Source: Octopus bimaculoides
Lineage: Eukaryota
Length of the DNA stretch: 64,000 nt
Assembly (NCBI RefSeq): GCF_001194135.2
Contig: NC_068992.1
Location: 31,727,257 to 31,791,256 of the forward strand
Reading direction: 5' to 3'
This document shows positions 2,665-58,030 of the stretch, in pieces (within the stretch, counting starts at the first letter, position 1; each line of letters begins with the position of its first letter). Both the position numbers and the translations under genes were made by a program. The notes under the pieces are model-generated. The model saw only the letters and a list, made by a program, of their open reading frames with translations. It ran no database searches and was not told where the DNA came from.

Positions 2665-2798
2665 TATTCTTTACTTCTCTTGGCACTAGGGCCGAATTTT
2701 GAGGAAGGTAGGCCGTCGATTAGATCGACACCAGTACGCAACTGGTACTTAATTTATCGACCCACGTGCTAAGGTTTCGCCCAGTGTGCTAACGTTCC
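2665..2798 (-). mobile_element. tRNA-derived SINE, tail type 2, head-truncated and internally deleted
   Basis: Minus strand reads GGAACGTTAGCACACTGGGCGAAA..GTCGATAAATTAAGTACCAG..CTAATCGAC..GGCCCTAGTGCC; same family as 45830-46050 and 57205-57393. Confidence 0.75.
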
Positions 2799-2984
2799 TT
2801 ATTTCTTTATTGCCCACAAGGGGCTAAACATAGAGGGGACTAACAACGACAGACAAAAGGATTAAGTCGATTACATCGTCCCCAGTGCGTGACTGGTACT
2901 TAATTTATCGACACCGAAAGGATGAAAGGCAAAGTCGACCTCGGCGGAATTTGAACTCAGAACGTAACGGCAGACGAAATACCA
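2799..2984 (-). mobile_element. tRNA-derived SINE, tail type 1, 5'-truncated
   Basis: B-box-like GAGTTCAAATTCC, core CCTTTCATCCTTTCGGTGTCGATAAATTAAGTACCAG and tail ATGTTTAGCCCCTTGTGGGCAATAAAGAAATAA; homologous to 56965-57197. Confidence 0.85.
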
Positions 2985-5010
2985 ATTTCTTTATTGCCCA
3001 CCGGGGGCTAAACATAAAAATAAACAGAACAACTGATGGGATCAGTAATGCGGTATGATTTTACATTAAATGTGACTTTTAAAAATTAACTAAAATATAA
3101 AAAATCGAATGAAATTAACAATACAGTGACATTACAAATGAAGCGATCATCAGGCCACACTCCGAACCTACAAGGCCCGATCTATCGCTGGTACCTTTTT
3201 TTTTGTCCTTTTTTGTTTCGTCTATTCATACAGTCCCTTGCACGCACAGCACTCGTGCAACATGCTTCCATCTCTTTTGGAACATTCTCTCCGACAGACA
3301 CCTCTTCTCCAGCCACACCTTCCTATTCAAATGAGAAGTAAAAACTGATCGTAAATTGTGGCCAGAGATAAAGTTACCTGTCTTAATTCTTTTTATTCTA
3401 GTCTTCCATACTGCCTCTTTCGCTATTGCCACAACCATGAGAAAACAAATATTACCTTCGTTTGTTAAAATTCCCGGTGGGTCAATTTTTATAATTGACT
3501 CAGTCGACAGGTGCACTCTTCCTTCGCCGGACAACAGGTGTTCAGCATAAGCCCACATTTCAGATACATCCGAAAACTGAACAATAGCGTGGGGGACGGG
3601 TTCCCTGTCTCCCCCGAATCTTGGACAGGTCGGCAACTGACNNNNNNNNNNNNNNNNNNNNNNNNNNNNNNNNNNNNNNNNNNNNNNNNNNNNNNNNNNN
3701 NNNNNNNNNNNNNNNNNNNNNNNNNNNNNNNNNNNNNNNNNNNNNNNNNNNNNNNNNNNNNNNNNNNNNNNNNNNNNNNNNNNNNNNNNNNNNNNNNNNN
3801 NNNNNNNNNNNNNNNNNNNNNNNNNNNNNNNNNNNNNNNNNNNNNNNNNNNNNNNNNNNNNNNNNNNNNNNNNNNNNNNNNNNNNNNNNNNNNNNNNNNN
3901 NNNNNNNNNNNNNNNNNNNNNNNNNNNNNNNNNNNNNNNNNNNNNNNNNNNNNNNNNNNNNNNNNNNNNNNNNNNNNNNNNNNNNNNNNNNNNNNNNNNN
4001 NNNNNNNNNNNNNNNNNNNNNNNNNNNNNNNNNNNNNNNNNNNNNNNNNNNNNNNNNNNNNNNGTTCGGAAAAACCTCTGAACTCGTGGAACATTTGTCT
4101 GGCCAGCGGAGGCCACACCCGTTCACTATCCAGGAGAATTCAGAGCCACCTCAACCTCAACGCATGCCGGCGCATCATTAACCAAGGCATCCCTAAACCT
4201 CCCTTTAAAGGCTTTTGACAGCAGACAGAGCGTTTCACAAGTGGCGACCTGCCCTTCCAAAAAAAGCGAAAGAGCTGTCTCTCCAACATGATCAACCACG
4301 AATCCGGACAAGGCACGACGGTCAGGTGGTATGTAATGCCCGATGCGATAAACACATTGGCCACCTCCACCCTCCCTTTCAGGGATAGCCATCGCCAAGA
4401 CCAGGTCTTGACTACTGCAGCCACCCTGCTCAATACCTCCGTCCGATTCCTCTCGATCTAGAGGCCTGGTCCGAACCAAACTCCCAGCATTGACTTACCA
4501 ACCCAGGTGCCGATCTGCAAGCCGACCGACTTTTCCTGGTTAATCTTTGCTCCTGCCACATCCTCGTAAACCACAATAGTCTTACCCACTTCACGTAGGC
4601 GTGCTACTGAGGTTACGCTGATAGTGATATCATCCGCGTAAGCCGTAACAAACCCCTCTAGACCTGGTTCTCTCGGGATGCCACTCAACCTTCGCAGCAG
4701 GTGCTCGAGAGCCACCGTATACAAAAGTGGTGAGAGCGAACATCCTTGACGAACCGAGCGTCTGATGCAGAACGGATTCGAAAGGAAACCGTTCACCAGA
4801 ACTATCGAGTCAATGTTGAGGTACAAAGCGATAAACCACTTGAGGAAGCCAAGGCCCAGGCCGAAGCGCGCAAGCACAGTCACCAGGTATCGATGGCCAA
4901 CACTATTAAAAGCTTTAGACTGGTCCAAATGTACCAATGCCCCACCTTTGCCAGACTGGCGGAGATTTCCACACGTGGAATTTGCTTCATTCTCAGGCGA
5001 TAACATGACA
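2985..5010 (-). mobile_element. Tx1/L1-clade LINE 'A', 5'-truncated: RT, C-terminal region and 3'UTR; gap at 3642-4063
   Basis: RT motifs LDQSKAF, RQGCSLSPLLY, AYADD; downstream LSLKGRVEVAN..KGGLG; degenerate C-terminal Zn-knuckle region TCPRFGGDREPVPHAIVQF; stop at 3226; tail ends GGGCAATAAAGAAAT at 2985. Confidence 0.9.
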
Positions 5011-11324: not shown

Positions 11325-11505
11325 GGCACAAGGCCTGAAATGTGGGTGGAAAAGACTAATCAGTTACATCGTGCCCAGTGCTTCACTAGTACTTAATTTA
11401 TCGATCCCAAAAGGATGAAAGGCAAAGAAAGTCGACCTGGATGGAATTTGAAATCAGAACTTAAGGACGGACGAAATTCCGCTTAGCATTTTGTCCGGCA
11501 CGCTA
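11325..11505 (-). mobile_element. tRNA-derived SINE, tail type 2
   Basis: Reverse complement of the SINE core (AATTTATCGATCCCAAAAGGATGAAAGGCAAAG..GTCGACC..GAATTTGAAATCAGAAC) and type-2 tail GGCACAAGGCCTG. Confidence 0.8.
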
Positions 11506-14500: not shown

Positions 14501-17500
14501 CTGTTTTAAGGGATTAATGAGTATATATTCGGTGATGTCACGGCTGCGTCACTAGTAGTTTTCCTTGTTTAGTGTTGGCTTTCCGCAGTCATAGATTTGG
14601 TAAAAGATAGCTCACACGTAGCACTGAAAACATAAACTATAGAATATAAACGAATAATAAACAAACGAGTGTGCATTTCACAGTTAAGCATTTCATATGT
14701 AGAGGAGGGTTTGTTCAGTACTGCTTCATAGCTAACATATAAATTATGCACTGCGAAATCACTGATGAGTAAATAATTCATTCTTAATAATTTCCTGGAA
14801 TTCATGGATTTTAACAATAGAAAAATATATATATTCAAGTTGTAAAATATATGTTTAGCACCAAGCGAAGTCATCGTAGCTTGCATTAATGTTACACGAT
14901 TGGAAAGTGTAACCGCTCATCATTCGGCAATTGTCTGAAATACAGCTATGGAAAATAGATATAGAATAAACATGATTATATAATTTTCATGGAAAGCTAT
15001 TTCAAAAATAAAGGAGTATAAATATCCAGGGTGTGGAGGAGTAGCGTTCACATACTGGATAATAACAGAAATATATGACATTTAATAGTAATAACGTATT
15101 GATCAAAACATAGATTATCAGAGTAAGTGTGTGGTTAACGTCTTTTGAAACAGAGAGGTTACGAATAAGAGCAAATGGCGAATGGATAGCGTAGAGGATT
15201 GGTAGAATAAAATATCGAATAAAAAAGATGAAATGTCTGAGCAAACTAGGTTGACATAGAATTTGAAAATTTGAAACTAGAAAATACTAAGCATTTGATG
15301 GAATAACATACTGTTCGTTTAACTATGGACAAACCAGTAAGTCGTTAATATTGCAAAGACGAAAACCGATATATTTATTTTGATGGGATTAAATAAAATA
15401 CGTTATAATAAAGAAACGAAATAAATACATCACACTTTCTGGGTTGTTTGGACCGCAAGAACTAATGTTACATTATATAACAAAATTGATGAATATATAT
15501 TGTTAATATGTATTTCTTCTGGACTTAATTTCAGATACAGAAGCAGACCTGTTATGCATTCTGTTAACTGTACTACTACCGTTCACAGTGAAGCATTCAT
15601 ATACCATTGGCGAACCTTTTACTCTTCTGACTAACCTGTAGAGTTTCATGAATAATTTATTACTCTAAATCTATCTCCCGGGAGGTGTCACGGATAAAAT
15701 ACCGTCTCAAATATTGGCGTCTACTGAATATACGCATTTAATTTATAAATCTAACATTATTGAATATTTTCTGGGCTCAATTTTCGCCGAGATCGACAGT
15801 TGTTTTCATTCTTTTGCGGTCGATGAAATAATAACCAGTTGAACAAAGGTATGGATGTATTCGACTTAACCGATCCACCGAAGTTGCTGCAGGTCTACCA
15901 AAATTTGAAAGCAATATATAAAGTTTCAGATTATCAAATACACTGGTAGTCACAAACCTGTTGTTTGAAAGGTCGTATATTGTTTTTAGTATACTTGGAT
16001 TGGAATTTTCATTTGTATTCTTTTTACATTAGAACAATAGTACGCATGTGGATTAAACTAATAAGGAAAACTGAAAGTTAGACTTAAAAAAAAAACACGT
16101 CTTCCCATTGAATGATGTGAACAAAATATTGAGGCATTTATTCAAAACTGTTTACTCTTTGATGTACAGTCGAAACTCTCGAATCTTACCTAACTTAAAT
16201 AATTCTAGAAAGGATTGTCATCTATAAGAAACTTGAGCACAAGGGATAAGATCATATGTTCGAACTGCTCTAGTTGCGTTTTTTTTTAATATCCACTAAA
16301 CATGGGCAACATTACTCGCGTTGAAATAGAATTTTAAAAAAATATCTATTGTAACTCATCTCTCCGGATACAACAATATGAAATACCAGTTCACTACTTC
16401 TATCTGCAGTCATAAGAGTATACAAAACCGGCTTGTAAATTTTTTCGTAGAGATCATTGTAATTGAATCTATATAATGAGAGCTTTTGAAAGACTTGATC
16501 TTAAATTATTAGCCTGCTGTTAATAAACTCTATCCGTTCTCTCTCTGGCTCTCACTCTCCATCAGGCTATCTATCTGTCTATGTATCTCTGCCTCTCTCA
16601 TTCTTTCTTTCTTTCTTATTGGTGAACAATTGACGATCTGACACGAAAAAACTGAAAATCGGGAACGCCTTTCAAATAAACACTTTTCTATTTATATGGC
16701 ATGTCTAATATCATAAGATACAGAAGTTTGCGAAGTTTAGCTTGCCTCAAATTAATAAGTGCGGGTGATTCTAGAAAGGGATGAAATAGCTGTAAACATA
16801 GCTATCAACAAGAAACTACAATCTTATAGATTGTAGTAAAAAATATAAATGCTATCACTCCATAAAACATCCTTGCTCTTTGATGAACATTCCAGTCATT
16901 TTAGTTCATATCACATCGATTTAACTTAAGATAGGAATTGCGTGCACTATGATACTTGATCACCAGGATTATACCATATGATTATACTAATACCAAAGTT
17001 TTGGTAAAAGGAAAATATATTTCAAATATAAAGTAGCAAGAAGATGTGAGCACTTACTGATTTTCTTATCTATGAATCTTCCCAATTCAAAATTCTTAAT
17101 TATTGCTTCAATAAAAGCGATCCATATGTGCACTGAAGACCATAGAGAGAAAACAGCATAAAATCTATTCCTAAATCGGTTCAGAGACCATTAATAAAAT
17201 AACATACTGTTACGTATGGAATTGTAAGTACCTGATGCTTATATAAATGGACTTGTTTGAAAACTATTTATAAACTGCCTACAGGTTCCTATCGAGACAT
17301 AGGTACAGAAGAGAGACGAATGTTTATTTTTTTCATTCAACACATTATTTGTGTACCTAATACACGCACATTAGATATAAAGAATATATTTTAAATGCAA
17401 AACGCTTTGAAAAAAGAAGCATCTTTGAATTTGCATAAATCTAAAAATGAATTGTACGAGAAATAAATGCAAAAAAGACAAGTAAAATAAATGAATTTGT

Positions 17501-17633
17501 TTCTGAAGTAAATCATTATATATACATGTGTGTAATATAGGATGTCCGTGCAACATGCCAGGTCCTCCAAAAGAATCAAATTTAAATGAATAATAAAGAT
17601 AATAATTCAAAAATTGAACGATGTGAACATCAG

Positions 17634-17676
<43 letters not shown>

Positions 17677-17698
17677 CAGTAGCAGCTCGGTTTTCGAA

Positions 17699-19451
17699 AA
17701 GCTTGTTTATTTATTGCCCACACTGGGCCAACGTAGAGGCGACACTACAGCCTGATTTGGGGTCAGACACAAAATGACGTTTAAAAAATTACAATATCGA
17801 ATGGAAAATCGGATAGAAACACAAATTACAAAACAAATTGACAAACATAAAAACGAGGCAAGACAACAGGTTTTAGCTCCGACCCCACGAGCCCTGTTCC
17901 ACTACCGACACCTTTTGGTAATCCTTATGACATGTTTACGCAGTGTCTTTCACACATAACATTCGTGCTACACGTGTCCATCTGTCTTTGTACGTTCTCG
18001 CTGACAGGCATCCCCTCTCTAGCCCCCTTTCATTTTCAGGTGAAAAATCTCACCAAAGTGAGGCCAGAGATGAAGCTGCTTGTCACCAATCCTTTCATTC
18101 TCGACCTCTATATCACCTCTTTCGTGATTGTTACGACGACGAGAAACCAATTCTTACCTTCTTTCATAAGGAAATCCGTGACTCAGACGACAGCTGTACT
18201 ACTCTTGCATCTAACAGAGGTGTTCTGCAAAAACCTACACTTCTCACACTTCCGGACACTGAAAAATCGCGTCCAGAATGTTTTCGCTGTCCTGCTTGCA
18301 TCTTGCACAGGCCGATGAGCCGGGATGGCTTTGTCTAGTGGGCTTATTCCGAACGGCTAAGGCTCCTTGGTAGCACAGCTAGGCCAGAGACTTTTGGAAG
18401 TTATCCAGTGTCTTCTGCCCGAATGTCCTTTGAAACAGACTATCTAACTGATTATTATCGAGACCCAGGGTCTGCCCAAGGGTGTTGTCACATCCAGCCT
18501 CTACCGACCTGCTATAAAAAATGAGGTTGTACCATAACTGCTGGCATTGCCCGTGTAATGGCACACCATATACCAAGTACCAAACCTCGAACTTCGACGA
18601 AACTAGCTTTTACGTCCACCAAAACTAATGAACCTGGGAAACAACCGTTTCACGAGCGGAGACCACACCTGTTCACCATCAAGTTAAAGCCATAGTTACC
18701 TCAACCTCAACACCTGTTTGCGCATCAACAGCCACAGCATCCTTAGTCCACCCTTTAACGGTTTTTGACAGCAGGTAGAACATCTCACAAGTGGAGTCAA
18801 GCCCTTCCACAAGAAGTAGATCTATCTCTCCAAATTGCTCAATCACGAATCTGGACTAGGAACGACGGTTACGCAGTAAATGATGACAGATACGGTGAAC
18901 ACATTGGCCACCTCCACCCTCCCATTCAATGATAGCCATTATTTTATGGTCTTCCTGCATTTCTGTTAATTTTTTTTTTAACCTTTCCTCCCGCTGCTGC
19001 TGCGAAATCTACCTTTCTTGAGGTCTCTTCATTGCCAGGATTGCTACCCCAATATTTCTTATACTGTGCAGTTTTTCTAGTGAGTTTTCTCTTTTGTTTC
19101 CTTACAACTAGTGTACGTCTTTCTTGTGAGTCGTCTTCCGACAGACACAACTCTGGAGTATTTAGGTTTTCCATTTTCAAAAAATGGCGCAAACAATATT
19201 TTTCAAAGCAGTTTTTTGGCTTACGCCGCACAAAAATATTCTGCTTCCACAGAAAAAGAATACTTATTTCCCCGCGCGGGGTAATTTCCAATAACTTACT
19301 TTTAAACAAAGCAACAACCAGTCTGTTTTTTTTCTTTGTTTTTTTTTACAATTCAACAATTCTCCTAACAATGAACAACAAACTTCCTCCTTGCACAACT
19401 CAACAGCCATACAGTAAATAATTCACATAGAAGGACGAGACAAACTAGTAA
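17699..19451 (-). mobile_element. Tx1/L1-clade LINE 'B', internally deleted: putative 5'UTR and ORF1 N-terminus joined to the 3' part of ORF2 and the 3'UTR
   Basis: 18700-18945 resembles element A (LSLNGRVEVANVF); ORF2 remnant at 18379-18576; tail GCCCAGTGTGGGCAATAAATAAAC; flanked by CGGTTTTCGAA at 17688-98 and 19452-62; ORF1 assignment of 18944-19174 (KVDFAAAAGGK) is tentative. Confidence 0.75.
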
Positions 19452-19468
19452 CGGTTTTCGAACAACTC

Positions 19469-20965
19469 ATTCTTTTTTATTCTCCAGAGTGGGCTATATA
19501 AAGACTTGTTTTACAGCACAAATATAAAATCGGGGAATTAAATACACAAGTAGGAAATCGAGTAAAGAAGATAAAATAAAAGAAACGAATGAAAGTATGA
19601 AAAGTGATATAATGAAACGCAATTCTCACTTTACCTCCCATGTCGAGTGGTTACATCTACAGACGTTCACATTTTTTCCATTTTTTTAAAAGAAAATGTT
19701 CAAATTTTTATCATCTTTTTTTAAAATTGTTCATGTTATATTTAATATTCCATGTCTGAAGTTTTAAAACTTTGAAAGTGCCAGCACAGGCGGCATTGCA
19801 TTAAACAACACCGGCCCGATAGTCATCGTAACCAATCTACGATAAGAACTTTAAAACAATGTCGTACCTTTCGTCGTTTAACAGCACACATCTCTCATTT
19901 TCCCCGAACTTCTCTTTGGGCAGTTTCACCCTTATAAAATCCTTCCACTTAGATATATGTTTCTCCACCACTACACACTTCTTGTAATAAATCATGAATC
20001 CCTTATTCTTGTAATCCTCCTCCTCTTCCGGTTACTTCTCTACTTCCCGCGCAAGCTTAGACGGCTCTTCATTTCTTTTGGTACTCTTCTCAACTTCTAC
20101 TGCCGATCCTTGTGAGTGTTCTCTAGATCTTCCTATTTTTTCTTCTTTTGGGGCTGACAAACTCGTTACTTCCCCTCCTTTGCCGCTTTTTTTCTACCTT
20201 CCTTCTCTTTTGTTTTACTTCGTTTCAGTTTCTTCCTCCATCTTCATTTTTCGTTCTTTATCTTCTACCTTATCACCCTCCTTCGTATGCTCACTCTGCG
20301 TATACTCGTACATGGAGCATTTTGTCTTCATATGATCCCTCACACCACAAATGTAGCAATCGGGTCTATGTCCTTCCACAATCACCTACAGAGAACTCTC
20401 CCCAACAAACTCAATCTGGTAGGTAACCCTTTCTGTATCTTCAAATGTGGCAAAAAGCCGCATCCTCATCAGTTCAGCATATTTGACCTTCCTACAGGTC
20501 TAAGTTCCAGCTTGTCCTCAGTGGAAGCCAGAAGAGCTGACACCAGCAACTCTGTTTTAATTTCGGGTGGCACTCTCACTACCCTGATCCAAACACTGCG
20601 CCTTCCCCTATACGTGGGTAGCAGCGTCACCTTGTCCGACCACAGGATGGTGGTGGAGCGTGAGGCCGCCTCCTCGTTGGTGGCAAATCTCACCTCTACA
20701 GTGTCATACCTCCTCCCTCTGCTAACAAATGTCGCATTCTTCATTCTGTCTCGTACATATTCCTCAACATCTTCGCCAGACAGCTTCTCCATTTTGTTTG
20801 TGGAGATCGCTTGTGTGGAGAAAAGAGTACTTAACAATAACAGCAGCAAATAACAATACGCACAAGTCAATTCGACAGTAACAATAACAGTAATAGCAAC
20901 AGCAAGTCGCAAAGACACAACGTTCCTTTATCGCACCATGGTCAAAAATTACTAACTCCTCACTT
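19469..20965 (-). mobile_element. Tx1/L1-clade LINE 'C': 5'UTR, ORF1 and 3' end, ORF2 almost absent
   Basis: ORF1-like FVSRGRRYDTVEVRF..RVVRVPPEI and gag-type knuckle VEGHRPDCYICGVRDHMKTKC; tail ATAGCCCACTCTGGAGAATAAA; flanked by GGTTTTCGAA at 19453-62 and 20966-75. Confidence 0.75.
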
Positions 20966-21132
20966 GGTTTTCGAACGCCTCTAATCACGAGTAAATCGTG
21001 CTTTTCACACACACCATATATGTGTGTGGTATATATATATATACATAAATAAAGCACGATTTATTCGTGATCAGAGGCGTCGGAAGCCGAGGTGCTACTG
21101 TATTAAATGAATATTGAGAAAGACAGGGGGAT

Positions 21133-21182
21133 AAAGTACGATTAATTCGTGATGAGAGTTGTTCGAAAACCGAGATTCTACT
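21133..21182. repeat. Orphan variant copy of the MITE terminal inverted repeat
   Basis: AAAGTACGATTAATTCGTGATGAGAGTTGTTCGAAAACCGAGATTCTACT aligns to 21051-21100. Confidence 0.75.
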
Positions 21183-21203
21183 CTCTCTCTCTCTCTCTCT
21201 CTC

Positions 21204-21249
<46 letters not shown>

Positions 21250-21619
21250 GTTTTCTATCAGTAATTAGAAATAGGACAAGGTGAATTGGTTCTTTTCATG
21301 GCCAAGGTCAGCGCACTCATTGATCGCTAGTAGTAGTAAACACATTTGACCTCTGCTGACTCCAATGGTGTGAGGCGGCTTTTGTTTCTTCTGCCACATT
21401 ATCGCACAGGAATAACCATTTCTGATCGCTTCACCATCTGCCGAATATATCTACAGAGCTGTTGAATTTAATCTCGTCACCAAGTTGTATCGCTTGCTAA
21501 TACTATTCCCTTAAACACTCACATATTTATGATCATCTCAAGCACATGTGAAAAGTTGAAACTAAACAACAATCAATAATGCTTTTTAATAATAAATGGA
21601 AATAATAATAATAATAATA

Positions 21620-21930
21620 AATTCGTTTTATTGGCCACAAGGGCTAATATCAATTAAAAACATATAAGGACAAAGACAGGACGAAGGTTACAAAAGGTTT
21701 TGTCCGAAAAGGTAGGAAAGTTCGTCTAAACAGAGGAAGAAAACGGAGAAAGATATAATGAATAAATAGATAAATAAATAGATAAATAAATAAGTAGAAA
21801 TCCCCGAAGGGGGAGGCGCTTCGAAAAAGTAAAGGTTACACGTGGAAAAACCCATAAAACCACGGGTGCCTGGTCAGAAAAAAAAATAAGAAAGGGGTAT
21901 AGAGCCCTTTCTCCTTTTACATTACCTTCT
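21620..21930 (-). mobile_element. Putative LINE 3'UTR fragment 'D' (Tx1-like tail) in a degenerate (AAT)n tract
   Basis: Minus-strand end TATTAGCCCTTGTGGCCAATAAAACGAA resembles the A, B and SINE tails; no coding sequence, so family assignment is inferred. Confidence 0.5.
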
Positions 21931-22129
21931 TTTTTTTTCAATAATGATGGTAATAATGATAATAGCAATAATTTAACCAAACTCATGTCGGATCAGAGAA
22001 AATATTAACGATGACAAATGGTAGTAAATAAATGAAAATAATAATATCGGTGATGATGATGACGATGATGATGATGTGGATAATGATTGGAAACGGTTTG
22101 AATCACCCTATGCTATTATTGATAATATA

Positions 22130-26092: not shown

Positions 26093-26131
<39 letters not shown>

Positions 26132-27045
26132 NNNNNNNNNNNNNNNNNNNNNNNNNNNNNNNNNNNNNNNNNNNNNNNNNNNNNNNNNNNNNNNNNNNNN
26201 NNNNNNNNNNNNNNNNNNNNNNNNNNNNNNNNNNNNNNNNNNNNNNNNNNNNNNNNNNNNNNNNNNNNNNNNNNNNNNNNNNNNNNNNNNNNNNNNNNNN
26301 NNNNNNNNNNNNNNNNNNNNNNNNNNNNNNNNNNNNNNNNNNNNNNNNNNNNNNNNNNNNNNNNNNNNNNNNNNNNNNNNNNNNNNNNNNNNNNNNNNNN
26401 NNNNNNNNNNNNNNNNNNNNNNNNNNNNNNNNNNNNNNNNNNNNNNNNNNNNNNNNNNNNNNNNNNNNNNNNNNNNNNNNNNNNNNNNNNNNNNNNNNNN
26501 NNNNNNNNNNNNNNNNNNNNNNNNNNNNNNNNNNNNNNNNNNNNNNNNNNNNNNNNNNNNNNNNNNNNNNNNNNNNNNNNNNNNNNNNNNNNNNNNNNNN
26601 NNNNNNNNNNNNNNNNNNNNNNNNNNNNNNNNNNNNNNNNNNNNNNNNNNNNNNNNNNNNNNNNNNNNNNNNNNNNNNNNNNNNNNNNNNNNNNNNNNNN
26701 NNNNNNNNNNNNNNNNNNNNNNNNNNNNNNNNNNNNNNNNNNNNNNNNNNNNNNNNNNNNNNNNNNNNNNNNNNNNNNNNNNNNNNNNNNNNNNNNNNNN
26801 NNNNNNNNNNNNNNNNNNNNNNNNNNNNNNNNNNNNNNNNNNNNNNNNNNNNNNNNNNNNNNNNNNNNNNNNNNNNNNNNNNNNNNNNNNNNNNNNNNNN
26901 NNNNNNNNNNNNNNNNNNNNNNNNNNNNNNNNNNNNNNNNNNNNNNNNNNNNNNNNNNNNNNNNNNNNNNNNNNNNNNNNNNNNNNNNNNNNNNNNNNNN
27001 NNNNNNNNNNNNNNNNNNNNNNNNNNNNNNNNNNNNNNNNNNNNC

Positions 27046-27083
<38 letters not shown>

Positions 27084-29966: not shown

Positions 29967-30730
29967 NNNNNNNNNNNNNNNNNNNNNNNNNNNNNNNNNN
30001 NNNNNNNNNNNNNNNNNNNNNNNNNNNNNNNNNNNNNNNNNNNNNNNNNNNNNNNNNNNNNNNNNNNNNNNNNNNNNNNNNNNNNNNNNNNNNNNNNNNN
30101 NNNNNNNNNNNNNNNNNNNNNNNNNNNNNNNNNNNNNNNNNNNNNNNNNNNNNNNNNNNNNNNNNNNNNNNNNNNNNNNNNNNNNNNNNNNNNNNNNNNN
30201 NNNNNNNNNNNNNNNNNNNNNNNNNNNNNNNNNNNNNNNNNNNNNNNNNNNNNNNNNNNNNNNNNNNNNNNNNNNNNNNNNNNNNNNNNNNNNNNNNNNN
30301 NNNNNNNNNNNNNNNNNNNNNNNNNNNNNNNNNNNNNNNNNNNNNNNNNNNNNNNNNNNNNNNNNNNNNNNNNNNNNNNNNNNNNNNNNNNNNNNNNNNN
30401 NNNNNNNNNNNNNNNNNNNNNNNNNNNNNNNNNNNNNNNNNNNNNNNNNNNNNNNNNNNNNNNNNNNNNNNNNNNNNNNNNNNNNNNNNNNNNNNNNNNN
30501 NNNNNNNNNNNNNNNNNNNNNNNNNNNNNNNNNNNNNNNNNNNNNNNNNNNNNNNNNNNNNNNNNNNNNNNNNNNNNNNNNNNNNNNNNNNNNNNNNNNN
30601 NNNNNNNNNNNNNNNNNNNNNNNNNNNNNNNNNNNNNNNNNNNNNNNNNNNNNNNNNNNNNNNNNNNNNNNNNNNNNNNNNNNNNNNNNNNNNNNNNNNN
30701 NNNNNNNNNNNNNNNNNNNNNNNNNNNNNN

Positions 30731-30764
<34 letters not shown>

Positions 30765-39479: not shown

Positions 39480-40545
39480 TTTGGTATGTTGGCCTTTGGA
39501 CTCTGACTGTAAACACAAGGAGTCCAACTAGGGAAAGAAGATCGGTAAGCCTCTGTCTCAGGAACTTAAAAACCTTATTACTGAAAAGTACAATGGAAAT
39601 AATGGCTATAAAAAGATTGCAAAAACTTCAGAATTGCCCCTAAACACTGTTAAAACTGTAGTTAAGAAGTGGTAAGTGCACAAAATCACTTCTACCCTAC
39701 CAAGATCTGGGAGACCGAGCAAACTTACCAGTAGAGCAAAGTCAAAACAGGTCCAGGAGGTAACCTCCAACATTAGTGCAACATTGGAAGACTTGAAAGC
39801 TTCAGTTTCCATTACTGGGACAGATGTCCATGCATCTACAATTTCTAGAGTATTGCAGCGGTCTGGCCTGCAAGGAAGGGTAGTTACAAAAAAACCTATA
39901 CACAAGCAAGCTAGGCTAAACTTTACCAAAAGTCACATTAATGATTCCTTGAACATGTGGCGAAAGATTTAGAGGTCAGATGGGACCAAAGTCGAGTTAT
40001 TTGCAAAACCTACGAAACGCTACGTGCGGCGGAAATAGGCACTACGCACCAACCTCGTTACACCGTCCCCACAGTAAAGAATGACGGTGGCTCGATCATG
40101 CTTTGGGGCTGTTTTTCAGCTGCAGGGCCTGGAGAGTTGGTATCCATCCAAGGTAACATGTACAGTGTCAAGTACCAAGAAATATTGGATGCAAACCTGC
40201 TGAAGTTTCGTAGAGCTCTGCGCATGGGTTGCAATTACAAGTTTCAACAAGATAACGACCCCAAGCATGTGTCAAAAAGCACTAGAGCTTGGTTTGCTAG
40301 CAAGAAAATCACTGTTTTGGAGTGGCCCAGCCAATCTCCAGACCTCAATCCTATAGAAAATCTATGGCGAGATCTAAAGCTGGCTGTGCACCGACGTTCC
40401 CCATCCAATCTGACACAGCTCGCAAGTTCTGCCATGAAGAATGGCGAAAACTGTCAGCGGACCACTGCAGCAAGCACGTGGAAGGCTACACATGGCGTCT
40501 GCAGGCTGTAATTGACACAGCAGGATCATCCGCGAAGCATTAGCT
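39480..40545 (+). mobile_element. Tc1 (DD34E) transposase pseudogene
   Basis: GYKKIAK HTH, LPRSGRPSKLT, SDGTKVELF, GGSIMLWGCF, FQQDNDPKH, WPSQSPDLNPIENLW; several stops and frameshifts; TIRs not identified. Confidence 0.92.
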
Positions 40546-42550: not shown

Positions 42551-43565
42551 AATATAAATATATGCACCCTTTCCCTATTCTTCTCTCCCTTTCACCGTCC
42601 CCTCTCTCTCACTCTTCCTCCTTGATGATTCTCTCGTCGCCGACACGTGACGAAAGGGGATCTCTCTTTCTGTCCACTTCCTGACTCTAAGAAAAGACGT
42701 GTCTCTTCCTGTTTTCTCTAAGGGCTCGTATATCTAGCGTTCATAATAATTTTTCTATCGTCTTGGATCAACAGCCCTGACCATTTGTTTTTATTGTCTT
42801 GTTCTCACTGTCCAGTTCTTGTTAACACATTCACCCTCCGCAAGAAATCCAAAATTTTTATTTAATTTACTTTGCGGGAAGGACTGTTTCAACGAAGTCG
42901 CGTATTGCCCTTGCCATCGAACGCGGAGTAGATGAAACAGGGACAACTGACGAAGGGGTATACTCTTTATGTTGCATGTCTCGTTTCTCTGTTTGTCTTT
43001 TTCGTTGTTCGAAAAAACGTGCGTTTTCTATGTTTATGTTTCTCATTGTGTTCAACGTTTTATCTTTATGTTCTGCACCCATATATGCATGTATATATAC
43101 ATATATATGTAGGTAGTACATATATGTATGGATATATGCATATATTTATATATTATTTATATTATTACGTATATGCATATGCATACATACATACATATAT
43201 ANNNNNNNNNNNNNNNNNNNNNNNNNNNNNNNNNNNNNNNNNNNNNNNNNNNNNNNNNNNNNNNNNNNNNNNNNNNNNNNNNNNNNNNNNNNNNNNNNNN
43301 NNNNNNNNNNNNNNNNNNNNNNNNNNNNNNNNNNNNNNNNNNNNNNNNNNNNNNNNNNNNNNNNNNNNNNNNNNNNNNNNNNNNNNNNNNNNNNNNNNNN
43401 NNNNNNNNNNNNNNNNNNNNNNNNNNNNNNNNNNNNNNNNNNNNNNNNNNNNNNNNNNNNNNNNNNNNNNNNNNNNNNNNNNNNNNNNNNNNNNNNNNNN
43501 NNNNNNNNNNNNNNNNNNNNNNNNNNNNNNNNNNNNNNNNNNNNNNNNNNNNNNNNNNNNNNNNN

Positions 43566-45714: not shown

Positions 45715-46050
45715 CGGGGGTCGATAAATTAAGTACCAGTTACCTACTGGGATCCATCTAATCAACTGGCCCACTCCCCCATAATGTCATGCCTTGTGCC
45801 TAGAGTAGGAAAGAATATTATGTTTTAATGAAGGCGGTGAGCAACCAGAAACTTTTGCACTCCGGGCGAAATGCGTAGCGGTATTTCGTCTATCTTTACG
45901 TTGAGTTCAAATTGCGGCTGGTTCGACTTTGCCTTTCATCCTTTCGGGGGTCGATAATTTAAGTACCAGTTGCCTACTGGGGTCGATCCAATCGACGGGC
46001 CTCCTCCCCCAAAATTTCGGGCCTTGTACCTGAAGTAGAAAGGGATATTG
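45715..46050 (+). mobile_element. Type-2 SINE tail fragment (45715-45810) followed by a near-complete type-2 SINE (45830-46050)
   Basis: GTCGATAA(A/T)TTAAGTACCAGTT core twice; tails GCCTTGT(G/A)CCT..AGTAG. Confidence 0.8.
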
Positions 46051-48900: not shown

Positions 48901-49079
48901 ACAAAAATTGGAAGAAAGAACGGTGACCCAAGAACGAGGAGCTGTGTGTGTGTGTGTGTGTNNNNNNNNNNNNNNNNNNNNNNNNNNNNNNNNNNNNNNN
49001 NNNNNNNNNNNNNNNNNNNNNNNNNNNNNNNNNNNNNNNNNNNNNNNNNNNNNNNNNNNNNNNNNNNNNNNNNNNNNNN

Positions 49080-50879: not shown

Positions 50880-52200
50880 AAAAATTAAATTTTGGCAAAT
50901 TTAAATGAAAAGTCTTTTTAAAAACAAATTTATCTTGGAGAACAACTACTTTGTCTTCAACGATATCTTCTACCGACAAAAATCGGGGACTCCGATGGGT
51001 ACGAGAATGGCCTCCTCCTTTGCTAACCTACTCATAGGATATCCAGAAATTAGTATTTATAATAGGGTTCTACAAAAATACGGCAGCCCATTCTCCCTAT
51101 ACATAGAAAATAACTGGAAGAGATACCTGAATGATTGTTTCATTCTTTGGCATGAAGGTATAGAGAGACTTAAAGAATTTCAAGCATTTCTAAATGGACT
51201 TGACGTAAACATTCAATTCACAATGGAATATAGCCATCAACAACTTCCCTTCCTCGACATCCTTATTAAAAAATATAACAACGTGACAGAAACAGATATA
51301 TACTATAAACCCACGGACTCAAAGCAATATCTATCGTTCAGCTCATGCCACTCCAGAAAAACCAGCATGAATATCCCCTTCAACCTAGCAAACTGGATAT
51401 GTACTATAGTTTCTAATGCAAGTACCAGGGACACTCGACTACACGAACTAAAGGATACTCTCACCACCAGAAACTACCCATCTACACTAATTGACACATG
51501 CTTTCAACGAGCCCTTCAACTCAGCATGCACGAACTCAGACATCCCAAATTAAAGAAGGTCTTACAACCAAAAGCCCTACCATACGTTTCCAGATACAAC
51601 CCTCTTACCAATGAAGCCTTCAACATCATCCTCCAAAACATTCCCCTGCTAAAAATGAACCACAGAATGAACTTAAAACTCCAGACACACACCATCATAA
51701 AAAGCAAGAGAGAGCCTAAATCTATGAAAAGTCTCCTAACACAAGCTTGAATACGCTCAACAACAACACTGAAGCCATCAGTAAAAAAATGCGGTAGACC
51801 CAACTGCGGGATATGCGTCAATTTAATTGAGGGATCAGAGTTCCCCTTCAAACAGGGACACAATTTTACAGTGAAAAGTAACTTCACATGTACTTCGGAG
51901 AACCTGATATACGCACTAACATACTCTGGGTGTCAAGAGCAGAACATAGGCGAAACAGAAAGCAGTCTGTGTCAACGGATGGCTTTGCACAAATCCCAGA
52001 TCAAAATTTCGAAAAAACAGGAAAGTAACATTCAGCCAACACATCGATATTTGCGCCAATAACAAAAATCCAAGTTTCAGAATGTTTCCCCTCTATCAAT
52101 TCAGAGATGATACACCTTACATCCAAAGAATTCGTAAAGAGTCTTTCTTTATCACAAAACACAAACCCCTTCTGAACGCATCTATAACAAATGACATATC
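50880..52200 (+). mobile_element. Penelope-like element: RT C-terminal half and GIY-YIG endonuclease, decayed
   Basis: FYRQKSGTPMGTRMASSFANL, WKRYLNDCF, IQFTMEYS..LPFLD, DIYYKPTDSKQYL..SCH; KCGRPNCGIC; FTCTSENLIYALTYSGCQEQNIGET. Confidence 0.92.
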
Positions 52201-54281
52201 CACCATGACCTTAGAATAACACACACGCAAATATTACAAATGATAAACTCCAAAGAGATACTCAAGGAATAATGAAAACATTTTTAAATATTAAAAAACA
52301 ACCCCACTCACTGCTCACTCGACTAGTTACTATCACACTATCCCGCATTCTATTATTACTCTTTCTCTTCTTCTACCCATCCTTCTTCTTCTCCGTCGTC
52401 TTCTTCGTCTTCTTCTTCTTTTCCACCACCTCCTCCCTTACTTTGTTACTACTACTGCTGTTTAGAATAACACCTACGCAAACATAATATATTCAAAAGG
52501 CATTTCTCAAGAATTCAAATCATTACTCCCGTCATCAACAGGTCATCTTCAGGACACTTAACCAATTAACACTCTGCTACTATCATAGCACTCCCACATC
52601 TTCTTCTTCTTCTTCTTCTTCTTCTTCTTCTTCTTCTTCTTCTTCTTCTTCTTCTTCTTCTTCTTCTTCTTCTTCTTCTCCTTCTCCAAGAATTCACAAC
52701 GACCGTGAACCCACAAGAGTTAACAAAAGAAACAAAGACAGACAGAAACAAGGAACATGCCCCATGGTATTCGAATGCTGTGCAAATATGTTTTTCAACA
52801 GACTTTTCATNNNNNNNNNNNNNNNNNNNNNNNNNNNNNNNNNNNNNNNNNNNNNNNNNNNNNNNNNNNNNNNNNNNNNNNNNNNNNNNNNNNNNNNNNN
52901 NNNNNNNNNNNNNNNNNNNNNNNNNNNNNNNNNNNNNNNNNNNNNNNNNNNNNNNNNNNNNNNNNNNNNNNNNNNNNNNNNNNNNNNNNNNNNNNNNNNN
53001 NNNNNNNNNNNNNNNNNNNNNNNNNNNNNNNNNNNNNNNNNNNNNNNNNNNNNNNNNNNNNNNNNNNNNNNNNNNNNNNNNNNNNNNNNNNNNNNNNNNN
53101 NNNNNNNNNNNNNNNNNNNNNNNNNNNNNNNNNNNNNNNNNNNNNNNNNNNNNNNNNNNNNNNNNNNNNNNNNNNNNNNNNNATATATATATATATATAT
53201 ATACGACGAACTTCTTTTCGTTTCCTAGTTTCCGTCAACCAAACCCACTCAGAAGGTTTTGGTCAACCCGAGGCCATAGTAGAAACATATGCCCAAGTTG
53301 CCATGTAGCAGTACTACTGAATCTAGAATAATGTGATTGTGTGTGTGTGTGTGTGTGGGGGTGTGTGTATAATCATACATGCATAAATAGGTGCATACAC
53401 ACACACACATGTTTATTTTACTATTTCCTTGAATAAGGACATTCAACTTTGAATTTTCATGCCTTTCACATACTTCTGTTTTTTTTTCTTTTTTAACATT
53501 TTCTGAGAAAGGTAATTTATACATTTTAGCAATGAAAGATTAGATGCTCTTGTTATAGTTTGTGATATTTTGTATCTATCTAAGCGGCGAATAAATCGTA
53601 ACATCTTTGATATCCATATAACTGAAAGGAAAAAGTATTTGGAGATGCTTGTTTAGAAAATCTTCAATTACACATTTATTACATCTTTGGATAAAAAGTG
53701 CATTAGCATTTATACCTTTTCTGAGTACACGTACTAAACATCTCTTTGTAATGGATTTGCTTCTTGCAATTTCGTAACAGGGCTTTCTACATACATGCAT
53801 ATATATACAGAGTGCAAGCACATAGAAGCAAATTATAAGATTATGCTGAACTAGTACGCGAAAAATTCTATGTAAACAAATTTAAGACGTTTTCCTTCAA
53901 ATAAAGTATAAGAAGCGCAGGAATAAATTTGTTTATACTTTTATAGTCACCTTTATCTAATGACTTTTTCTGTTAAAGACATTTCTGATAGGGTTATCAC
54001 TCAACGTACTTATACTTTTGTTGAAACAATTGTACTTTGTGTGTCATAGATTTTTAAACACAAAGATATGACCAGGTTGTTAGATTGTTATGAAGCAGTT
54101 TACTTTCCTATTTTAGGCAGGGGCTTATCGACAAGCGACTAAAATCGCGTAGGCATACATGTATGCACACACAATATATATACATATATACAGAGAGAGA
54201 GGAAGAGACAGAGAAAGAGAGAGACGAAAAACAGTGAGAGAGAGAACGAGACAGACGGAAGGAGAGAATGAGAGAGAGGGA

Positions 54282-55899: not shown

Positions 55900-58030
55900 G
55901 CCAAGAAGGAATCCTACTAGGTTGTTGCGAATCATTCTTATAAAGATTTGTTAGCAGTTTATGCCTCTCTGGGAAGGTATTAAACCTGAAGTTAGGAATT
56001 TTATCGTTTCCGGAAGATACCTTTTGGTTGACTTAATGACAGCTGATCTTACATACTCTACCTTGGTACCCTCCGCTTTTGCTCTTCTGTGGTGTCTCTA
56101 AGTTAGTAGATATTTTATTAATCCTACCACTCCAAGGGGCCTTTTTATTGTGTGTTTCGCCTTCTGCCCAAATTTTATTTCAACATTCCAGCACTTCTTT
56201 TGAATGGACAGGCTATACTTTAACTGTTGTTTGCTCTATCATCCTGTAAAAGATTTTTGTCTTATTTTTGAACATGTTGTTCTTGAAGAATCTAGCACTC
56301 TTTTCGTATCGTGCTATGCATCCAGCTTTAGCATATACTTTATGTTTGATAGTTCCTATGGTGGTATCGATGTGAAGTATGGTGTTCATATATTTTTTCT
56401 TTAATTTTCGGATTTTATTTTGGTTTGATAGTCTTGTCAAACTTAAAAACTTAAGGTGTTTTAAACATTCTATGTCAGACCTAAGTAACTGAATTTGGTG
56501 TTGAATACGCTCTTGCCAAGAAGGCTTTTTGTGGCAAAGTTGTCATTTTCTAATCTTTTCACCAGATAGAATCATCGAGATTTTCGCGGATGCATGTTTC
56601 ACATGGTTAAGATCACCATTAGCTGAAATGATATCCCTAAGTTCAAGGCGGACTCTACCATTTCCTTCCAGGTTTTGGTTAGAGTTCGAATTTTTGGGAG
56701 CGCGTCACATTCATTCATACTTGTGTCTTTAATTTTCAGTCATTCAATCATGATTTAATTTTTTTAGATCATCTAGTTTAGTTGGGTCAACTTCTGTGTG
56801 ACTTACTTCATGTGTTTGAATTTCATCTGCCTTGGTGCTTATGGTTATTTAAAAAGGTATTTCACTTTACTTATCAGTTACATTAACTATTTCTATCATT
56901 ACTGCATTTTCATCTGTCCTGGGCTGGTGTATAACTATTTCCTCTGTAGTATCTTCTTTAGCTTGGGCAGCAAGCTGGCAGGAACGTTAGCATGCTGGGC
57001 AAAATGCTTAGCGGTAATTCGTCTGCCATTACGTTCTGAGTTCAAATTCCGCCGAGGTCGACTTTGGCTTTCATCCTTTCAGGGTCGATAAATTAAGTAC
57101 TAGTCATGCACTGCGGTCGATGTAATCGACTTAATCGCTTTGTCTGTCCTTGCTTGTCTACTCTATGTTTAGCCTCTTGTCAGTAATAAAGAAATAAAAA
57201 AAAAGGTTAGCATGCCGGGCGAAATGCTTGGCGGCATTTAATTTGTCTTTACGTTCTGAGGTCAAATTCTGATGAAGTCGACTTTGCCTTTGATCCTTTC
57301 GGGGTTGATAGATTAATTACCAATTTCGTACTGGGGTAAATCTCATCGACTGACCCCCCCCCCCAAGTTTGGGCCCTGTGCTTAGAATAGAGAAGTATCT
57401 TCTTTAGCTGCAAATTCATTCCCTTAACTCCTTATTGATTGATTATTTTGTTTAATATCTAATTCAATTAGTAACTTCCTTTTCGTAATGTTTCTTCTTA
57501 TTTTGGCAAGTTTGTTACTGTCTATGTCGGGACATGTTTAGTTCGTTTTTTTCAGTATTAGATTTATTTGTGGGGAAATACATGGCATGAGAGAAGGCCT
57601 TAAGGACGTCTTTATTGTCTCCCCTAGACTATTTTTCATCTTGTTTCTTTTGGTTATTTGATGACGAGCGTGGATGGCCATTTGTTGGAATATTCCGGTT
57701 GTGGGGTACTTCAGGCTCCTGTGTTTCAGGAAGATTTGAACCACTAGCTGATTTTTCGTTTCGAGTCTGGTTCCTCACTGGGGTATGCAACCCTAGTTTA
57801 TACGAGTACGGTTGATCCGGTTTGGGTTTTTTTTTCTTAGTTATCATTGAGGCCGGACGAGCTTGGGCGTTGACATGACGGACATGCCTGTTTAGGTTTA
57901 ATTTTTGAGATAACACCGCCTCCGATTTCTCTGAATGAGGACATTTCTCGTAACGTAGCTTCTCAAAGATAATAGATCTGTATTCATCTGTATCTTTTTT
58001 GTTGAATGATTTATCTCCGGTTATATTATT
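55900..58030 (-). mobile_element. R4/Dong-like element, N-terminal half, decayed, interrupted by a SINE dimer
   Basis: KVYAKAGCIARYEKSARFFKNNMFKNKTKIFYRMI; KIWAEGETHNKKAPW..SGNDKIPNF. Confidence 0.7.
56964..57393 (+). mobile_element. Nested SINE dimer (type-1 SINE within the head of a type-2 SINE) with a 16-bp target-site duplication
   Basis: AGTATCTTCTTTAGCT at 56948-56963 and 57394-57409; type-1 tail ..TAATAAAGAAATAA followed by A-run and GGTTAGCATGCCGGGCG at about 57205. Confidence 0.88.

Follow-up and report, generated by a model that had tools for sequence, protein, structure and literature searches.

The stretch analysed here, referred to as the window, comprises 64,000 nt of contig NC_068992.1 of Octopus bimaculoides and is AT-rich eukaryotic DNA with many microsatellites, N gaps, and repeats. 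Between positions 17675 and 21102, it carries a miniature inverted-repeat transposable element (MITE), set in a (TA)n microsatellite, whose left terminal inverted repeat (TIR) is interrupted by two retroelement insertions designated as B (17699-19452) and C (19463-20965). When 17677-17698 and 20976-21100 are joined, a palindromic element CAGTAG...CTACTG of 147 bp is obtained, with TA on either side and two TIRs of about 50 bp that are identical at 45 of 51 aligned positions. The initial annotation had noted that removal of 17699-20975 restores a TA-flanked MITE of about 150 bp, in agreement with this result. Terminal inverted repeats and a TA target-site duplication, both present here, are the hallmarks of TA-targeting MITEs of the Tc1/mariner-pogo style, and we take CAGTAGnACCTCG to resemble the end of Tigger-type elements.

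The 10-mer GGTTTTCGAA was found on the plus strand at 17689-17698, 19453-19462, and 20966-20975, in exact matches at the three places where the TIR motif had been annotated, and on the minus strand at 21162-21171. Four copies in the window compare with 0.08 expected by chance, and four were reached in none of 100 shuffled sequences. The minus-strand copy belongs to a third TIR of this MITE family (TIR3), which stands alone about 30 bp from the MITE, shares 42 of 51 positions with the left TIR, and shows 81-84% identity in BLAST. Because TIR3 holds the 10-mer in one piece, the 10-mer is inverted-repeat sequence and not the terminus of a long interspersed nuclear element (LINE).

All retroelement parts of the locus lie on the minus strand, which corrects the initial annotation. 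Its description of B and C as two Tx1-like LINEs stands only for a part of B, as B is a composite of a 1.27-kb LINE 3' end of L1/Tx1 type (17699-18969), a run of ten A (A10), and a 473-nt segment X. The remnant of open reading frame (ORF) 2 in the LINE part is interrupted by many stops and frameshifts, but the C-terminal zf-RVT-type Cys/His region that follows the reverse transcriptase (RT) is present, including the Cys/His motif CARCKQDSENILDAIFQC, which starts near 18309. Positions 17948-18935 align to a zf-RVT (PF13966) protein of another organism (P0052, locus L002; tblastn summed E 2e-58), and a protein search with the stitched C-terminus of B gave no matches in a collection of 5.8 billion proteins. 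A second LINE copy in the window, B2 (2976-4960), is 66-77% identical to the LINE part of B at the nucleotide (nt) level (77% over 288 nt), and this homology ends just below the A10 run. An ORF of 121 aa (18944-19309) and a CCCCGCGCGGGG palindrome are present in segment X, for which tblastn gave no LINE homology and Pfam no family; comparisons with the window and the Logan loci were likewise without a match. As the LINE homology stops at A10, with 473 unmatched nt beyond, B bears the signature of a template-switch chimera in which a 5'-truncated LINE cDNA was continued on the A-rich end of another RNA. The U6/L1 template-switch chimeras (cited in PMC4494074) are similar in that a truncated LINE 3' end is joined to the 3' end of another RNA, here marked by A10; the partner is U6 there and the unmatched X here.

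Element C, 1503 bp in length, begins with a leader of 173 nt and ends with a trailer of about 370 nt; between them lies a degraded ORF of some 320 codons that includes a CCHC knuckle. It is ORF1-only and carries no RT, so that its annotation as a Tx1-like LINE is not maintained. For its ORF1, 173 homologues were found in a representative library of 1.84 billion proteins. The best of them is an intact protein of 453 aa, whose C-terminal part aligns also with the downstream frame of C. Pfam zf-CCHC was matched by C with E = 0.088, and by the intact relatives P0110 and P0236 above the cut-off. Beyond the knuckle, a profile search of PDB sequences gave only CCHC nucleocapsid-type matches, and Pfam likewise recognized the knuckle only. 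C-like elements are present in octopod read assemblies (Logan runs SRR11869384-94; contigs L015 and L018), where they are ORF1-only and about 1.4-1.5 kb long; the L018 element measures about 1.54 kb and has a tail on either side, and that on L015 is similar. A part of the 5' untranslated region (UTR) of C aligns to another C-like Logan contig (L016). Since an architecture with ORF1 alone, about 1.5 kb long, recurs on the octopod contigs, C is a member of a non-autonomous HAL1-like family and not a random deletion product. HAL1 (half-L1) elements are ORF1-only L1 derivatives of mammals. C resembles them in keeping a 5' UTR, an ORF1, and a LINE-type 3' tail without ORF2, and in being a recurring family (L015, L018), but its ORF1 is of the CCHC-knuckle type and not of the coiled-coil/RRM/CTD type of L1. 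The sequence allows no assignment of C to a clade and suggests no link to a Tx1 ORF2, and B for its part lacks an ORF1. On the Logan contigs L015, L016/L017, L018/L019, and L020, C-like copies mostly adjoin tails or heads of short interspersed nuclear elements (SINEs) or one another; on L018, a partial C-like copy is directly followed by a full one.

One 3'-tail motif, TCTATGTnTAGCCCCTTGTGGGCAATAAAGAAAT(AAGA), fits B, C, B2, a fragment at 21620-21900, and the local tRNA-derived SINEs (tRNA-SINEs). The tails of B and C are TAGCCCnnnnTGGGCAATAAAGAAAT-like, and apart from the tail motif the two elements showed no similarity when compared at the nt level. A common tail usually marks elements that use a common ORF2 machinery (PMC4494074), and the ORF2 proteins that moved B and C, presumably in trans, were probably identical or closely related and encoded at other places in the genome. 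The last 32 nt or so of a tRNA-SINE are shared with B2 (94% identity) and with B (2985-3016 compared with 2796-2838 and 17702-17743); an L1/Tx1-type LINE is therefore a likely partner of this abundant SINE subfamily. The SINE copies at 11350-11480, 45880-46050, and 57233-57395 have a different tail, GGGCCTTGTGCC...AGTAGAAAG. When the stem-loop of the tail was evaluated as an RNA structure, it was no better than in shuffled sequences.

B2 retains an RVT_1 domain. Among PDB chains, the closest solved structure to its RT is human L1 ORF2p (3e-16), compared with 8e-10 for R2. An intact relative on locus L001 has the domain order Exo_endo_phos, RVT_1, and zf-RVT. Its apurinic-endonuclease-like (APE) domain had no tblastn match in the window, where B is 5'-truncated and C is without ORF2; for this family, the initial statement that the window contains no endonuclease domain is confirmed. 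In tree-based surveys, Tx1 is the sole L1-group clade among those identified in molluscs (PMC10294476), and 13 recently active L1-Tx1 families were annotated in O. vulgaris (PMC13282606). On these grounds, the B lineage is tentatively assigned to the Tx1 clade, by elimination only. When the B2 RT and the C ORF1 were searched against the 5.8-billion-protein collection, the best matches were 47-65% identical and came from other organisms, and an exact look-up of eight ORFs of the window found none of the eight in the protein collection.

Read in LINE sense, the order at the locus is inner TIR ...GAGGCG, TTCGAAAACC, C, TTCGAAAACC, X-A10-LINE 3' end, TTCGAAAACC, and GAGCTGCTACTG-TA. B and C are thus co-oriented and the three 10-mers are exact, one of them sandwiched, which bears out the initial proposal that two non-LTR elements were inserted at one nucleotide in the same direction, with a 10-bp duplication enclosed between them. 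We favour, with some reserve, the explanation that B and C were placed here by two sequential target-primed insertions, made by shared machinery with a site-preferring endonuclease. In this scenario, two successive target-primed reverse-transcription events would have used one and the same phosphodiester bond of the left TIR, with equal orientation of the inserts, LINE sense being the minus strand of the window. In each event, the bottom strand would be nicked at 5'-GGTTTTCGAA^CGCC-3' and the top strand 10 nt away, giving a duplication of TTCGAAAACC in LINE sense, and the original 10-mer with two duplicates would make the three copies. Synthesis of the B cDNA may have begun at the 3' end of the RNA of an L1/Tx1-type LINE, broken off after 1.27 kb, and continued on the A-rich end of RNA X. 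The endonuclease of the shared ORF2 protein would have a strong preference for the TIR sequence, as a non-specific enzyme could not credibly have struck one bond twice with an identical stagger. The order of these events, and the validity of the preference across the genome, are what we infer from the features of the locus.

Two other stacks in the window served for comparison. One 13-bp duplication (56950-56962 and 57396-57408) encloses the SINE dimer at 56963-57395, with none between its units, and the stack of B2 and two SINEs at 2680-4960 (minus strand) has no repeats sandwiched between units. Template-switch stacking is therefore frequent in the window, yet these control stacks, being without a sandwiched duplication, are not like B/C. 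The dimer is composed of a full-length unit with an A-rich tail and a 5'-truncated unit with a different type of tail, and its duplication is TATCTTCTTTAGC. In the stack at 2680-4960, a 5'-truncated B2 (RVT_1 and zf-RVT), a 5'-truncated tRNA-SINE, and a second partial SINE are arranged head-to-tail, and it looks like serial template switching within one retrotransposition event.

The joint of C and B (GAGTTGTTCGAAAACCG, 19452-19468) has the same 17 nt as the TIR3 variant at 21156-21172, with GAGTTG, compared with GAGGCG in the host TIR. It is suggestive only, but the source copy of C may have sat in another copy of the MITE, and a read-through transcript would explain the 17-mer. A duplication of 16 bp, made of the hexamer and the 10-mer, was considered and rejected: the hexamers differ from the host GAGGCG at two and four of six positions, and the 10-mers are intact at 30 of 30. 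Coordinates of all features of the locus are given in Table 1.

Table 1. Features of the interrupted MITE, the insertions B and C, and the neighbouring solo TIR (positions in the window).
Position	Feature	Strand	Remark
17675-17676	TA flank, left target-site duplication of MITE		partner TA at 21101-21102
17677-17698	Left TIR of MITE, outer 22 nt, CAGTAGCAGCTCGGTTTTCGAA	+	final 10 nt are 10-mer copy 1
17699-17947	B: 3' UTR and tail of L1/Tx1-type LINE, tail ...GCCCAGTGTGGGCAATAAATAAACAAGCTT	-	tail family common to B2 and tRNA-SINEs
17948-18969	B: degraded C-terminal part of ORF2 (post-palm RT region and zf-RVT-type Cys/His motif)	-	tblastn to P0052
18970-18979	B: A10 run, junction of X with truncated LINE	-	
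18980-19452	X: 473 nt, 5' part of insertion B	-	read as template-switch chimera partner
19453-19462	10-mer copy 2 (GGTTTTCGAA)	+	sandwiched by C and B
19463-19836	C: 3' UTR and tail ...TAGCCCACTCTGGAGAATAAAAAAGAATGAGTTG	-	
19837-20792	C: ORF1-like frame, ATG at 20792	-	several stops and frameshifts; no ORF2
from about 20358	C: CCHC knuckle CYICGVRDHMKTKC	-	
20793-20965	C: 5' UTR	-	5' end adjoining 10-mer copy 3
20966-20975	10-mer copy 3 (GGTTTTCGAA)	+	continuous with inner left TIR
20976-21100	MITE remainder: inner left TIR, (TA/TG)-rich spacer of about 45 bp, right TIR	+	
21051-21100	Right TIR		target motif decayed to GGCTTCCGA
21133-21183	Solo TIR3	-	target GAGTTGTTCGAAAACCGAG intact, unoccupied

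Other explanations of the stack were weighed. It could have been formed in a single event, in which a TIR-primed LINE 3' end was continued on RNA X and then on a read-through transcript of C carrying at least 17 nt of TIR, so that the middle 10-mer was transduced. Template-switch stacks are indeed common in the window (2680-4960; 56963-57395; the X/B junction with A10), and the middle 17-mer is the TIR3 variant and not that of the host TIR; but three templates would be needed at once, and the stacks of the window are 5'-truncated at every switch, while C seems to reach a defined 5' end. We regard a single event as rather unlikely, and it would not remove the site preference either, because the master copy of C must occupy the same TIR position. 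The locus may otherwise be a local hot spot without targeting by the lineage, where a short common motif is used or the first duplication recreates the nick site, and the MITE is incidental. This would fit the same-tail relatives found in other contexts and the intact target in TIR3, 200 bp away and empty, and we suppose that the palindrome of the MITE could structurally favour nicking. By our own estimate, though, a weakly specific enzyme would be very unlikely to use the same bond and the same 10-bp stagger twice in a genome of gigabase scale, and the 3' flank of C resembles a different MITE copy, so that the hot spot appears quite improbable.

An ORF1 followed by an ORF2 C-terminus on one strand is also what a single LINE would show, and one internally deleted LINE (5' UTR-ORF1...ORF2 C-terminus-3' UTR), inserted once, would make the middle 10-mer and the tail of C coincidental. 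This explanation is disfavoured and has hardly any probability: the 3' end of C carries the canonical tail motif, C-like elements elsewhere contain ORF1 alone and terminate in tails of this kind, the two parts are separated by X and the A10 run, and an exact 10-mer at the joint has a chance of about 0.003 in 3.3 kb (own estimate). That GGTTTTCGAA is a terminus of the LINE consensus rather than the target, a possibility raised in the initial annotation, is suggested by its position at the junctions and by nothing else. It is refuted by the TIR copies in the window, as the motif is uninterrupted in TIR3 and decayed in the right TIR, and none of the tails of B2, the SINEs, and the C-like elements on the Logan contigs contains it.

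Two sequential site-preferring insertions remain our preferred explanation of the locus, and targeting by the whole lineage, with the MITE used as a safe harbour, is plausible, resting on two events at one locus. Tentatively, a cephalopod L1/Tx1-type LINE and its ORF1-only parasite may possess an endonuclease that reads about 10-20 bp in the TIR of a pogo-like MITE and nicks GGTTTTCGAA^C, with thousands of dead MITE ends serving as a safe harbour; we consider this possible, and do not put it higher. Several observations weigh against our preferred explanation. Only two insertion events are known, both at one locus. One of the three TIRs in the window is occupied, and the intact target at 21156-21172 is empty. 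No further TIR copies were found elsewhere in the 64 kb, both other copies being less than 100 bp away. B2, of the same tail family, adjoins a 5'-truncated SINE and not the motif; the B2/SINE junction is probably a template switch and so is uninformative on targeting. The fragment at 21620-21900 (minus strand), of the same tail family too, ends in (TTA)n and not in the motif, and the C-like elements on the Logan contigs (L015-L020) have no TTCGAAAACC within one mismatch. The 17-mer argument is weak as well, as GAGTTG may in part be the natural A/G-rich end of a tail and nhmmer gave E = 0.06. The inspected relatives are distant, with about 50% aa or 77% nt identity or less; they represent different families and therefore neither refute nor support targeting. 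If targeting is true, most 3' ends of the B and C families should adjoin TTCGAAAACCGAG(N)TGCTACTG-TA across the genome.

Candidates for further occupied or empty sites were also examined. A TIR-like stretch upstream of the L016 element, equalled by 23 of 2000 shuffles, was rejected, because its homologues are a fragment of a SINE head and, in L020, the 5' UTR of the element itself. A metagenome scan with the TIR sequence AGTAGNNNCTCGGTTTTCGAA gave 12 loci, about the number expected by chance according to our own estimate. One of them, L012, has 22 nt in common with TIR3, but these are located in the 3' UTR of a DGAT2-like gene, without a partner TIR or TA flank, and L012 was not accepted as a TIR copy. 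The fragment at 21620-21900 is the 3' UTR of another LINE, and its TTTTTCGAAGCGCCTC resembles the MITE target region GGTTTTCGAACGCCTC in opposite relative orientation. The target in LINE sense, GCGTTCGAAAACCGAG, resembles the B-box region of the SINEs, GAGTTCAAATTCCGCCGAG, a possible clue to recognition by the endonuclease; GCGTTCGAAAACCGAG and GTTCGAAAACC are presumably similar to the RNA polymerase III B box (GGTTCGAAnCC). No tRNA gene was predicted by ARAGORN in 17000-22000.

Insertion of LINEs into DNA transposons is an established phenomenon. Many elements of the Tx1 clade are target-specific (Kojima 2015, PMC4494074). Xenopus Tx1 (Tx1L) resides in Tx1D, a non-autonomous piggyBac element; the crocodilian Tx1-Mar families and SINEU insert into the non-autonomous mariner Mariner-N4_AMi at fixed positions and with one orientation; and the target of Tx1-9_AMi are Harbinger elements (PMC4494074). 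In the same study, tandem insertions sandwiching a target-site duplication were attributed to sequential insertion, and master copies inside the target were revealed by flank-derived extensions (PMC4494074). The octopus locus is similar to the Tx1-Mar/SINEU system in combining an L1-group/Tx1 LINE and non-autonomous passengers with a TA-type DNA transposon and tandem inserts that sandwich a duplication. The crocodilian system, however, is documented by hundreds of copies (e.g., 313 of 347 for SINEU-3), compared with n = 2 at one locus here, and its insertion sites lie in the interior of a longer element, at about 240 and 830, where 16 bp are duplicated. In the octopus, the site is within a TIR, the MITE measures 147 bp, and the duplication is one of 10 bp; the host is cephalopod-like and not crocodilian. 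Xenopus Tx1L/Tx1D is the founding case of a Tx1 LINE within a specific DNA transposon family; it differs in transposon superfamily and target, and Tx1L is full length, while neither of the octopus inserts is autonomous.

A literature search found no cephalopod or mollusc description of a LINE targeting a DNA transposon. The novelty suggested in the initial annotation is nevertheless overstated: the concept itself is published, with Tx1 elements on non-autonomous mariner, Harbinger, and piggyBac targets (PMC4494074), and the locus is at best a new cephalopod example of it. No new class of mechanism is opened. If the preference is genome-wide, the strategy of LINEs living inside DNA transposons would extend from vertebrates to cephalopods, and this would be the first such pairing of a LINE and a MITE in molluscs. 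The short and defined target (10-bp stagger, 50-bp TIR) would then be convenient for the biochemistry of APE-type endonuclease specificity. The locus would also be of help for octopus repeat annotation, where composite stacks of LINE fragments, ORF1-only elements, and SINEs are prone to being split or mislabelled by automated pipelines.

N gaps of the window are located at 3642-4063 (in B2), about 26100-27050, 29970-30740, and 43200-43560, near 49000, and at about 52810-53180, several of them bordered by microsatellites. As the assembly is a draft with N gaps, copy counts of short repeats are lower bounds. An ORF of 281 aa at 50905-51750 (plus strand) is RT-like in appearance and has no Pfam match. 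A fragment of a DDE_3 transposase of Tc1/mariner type is encoded at 39957-40511 on the plus strand (Pfam 1.6e-12).

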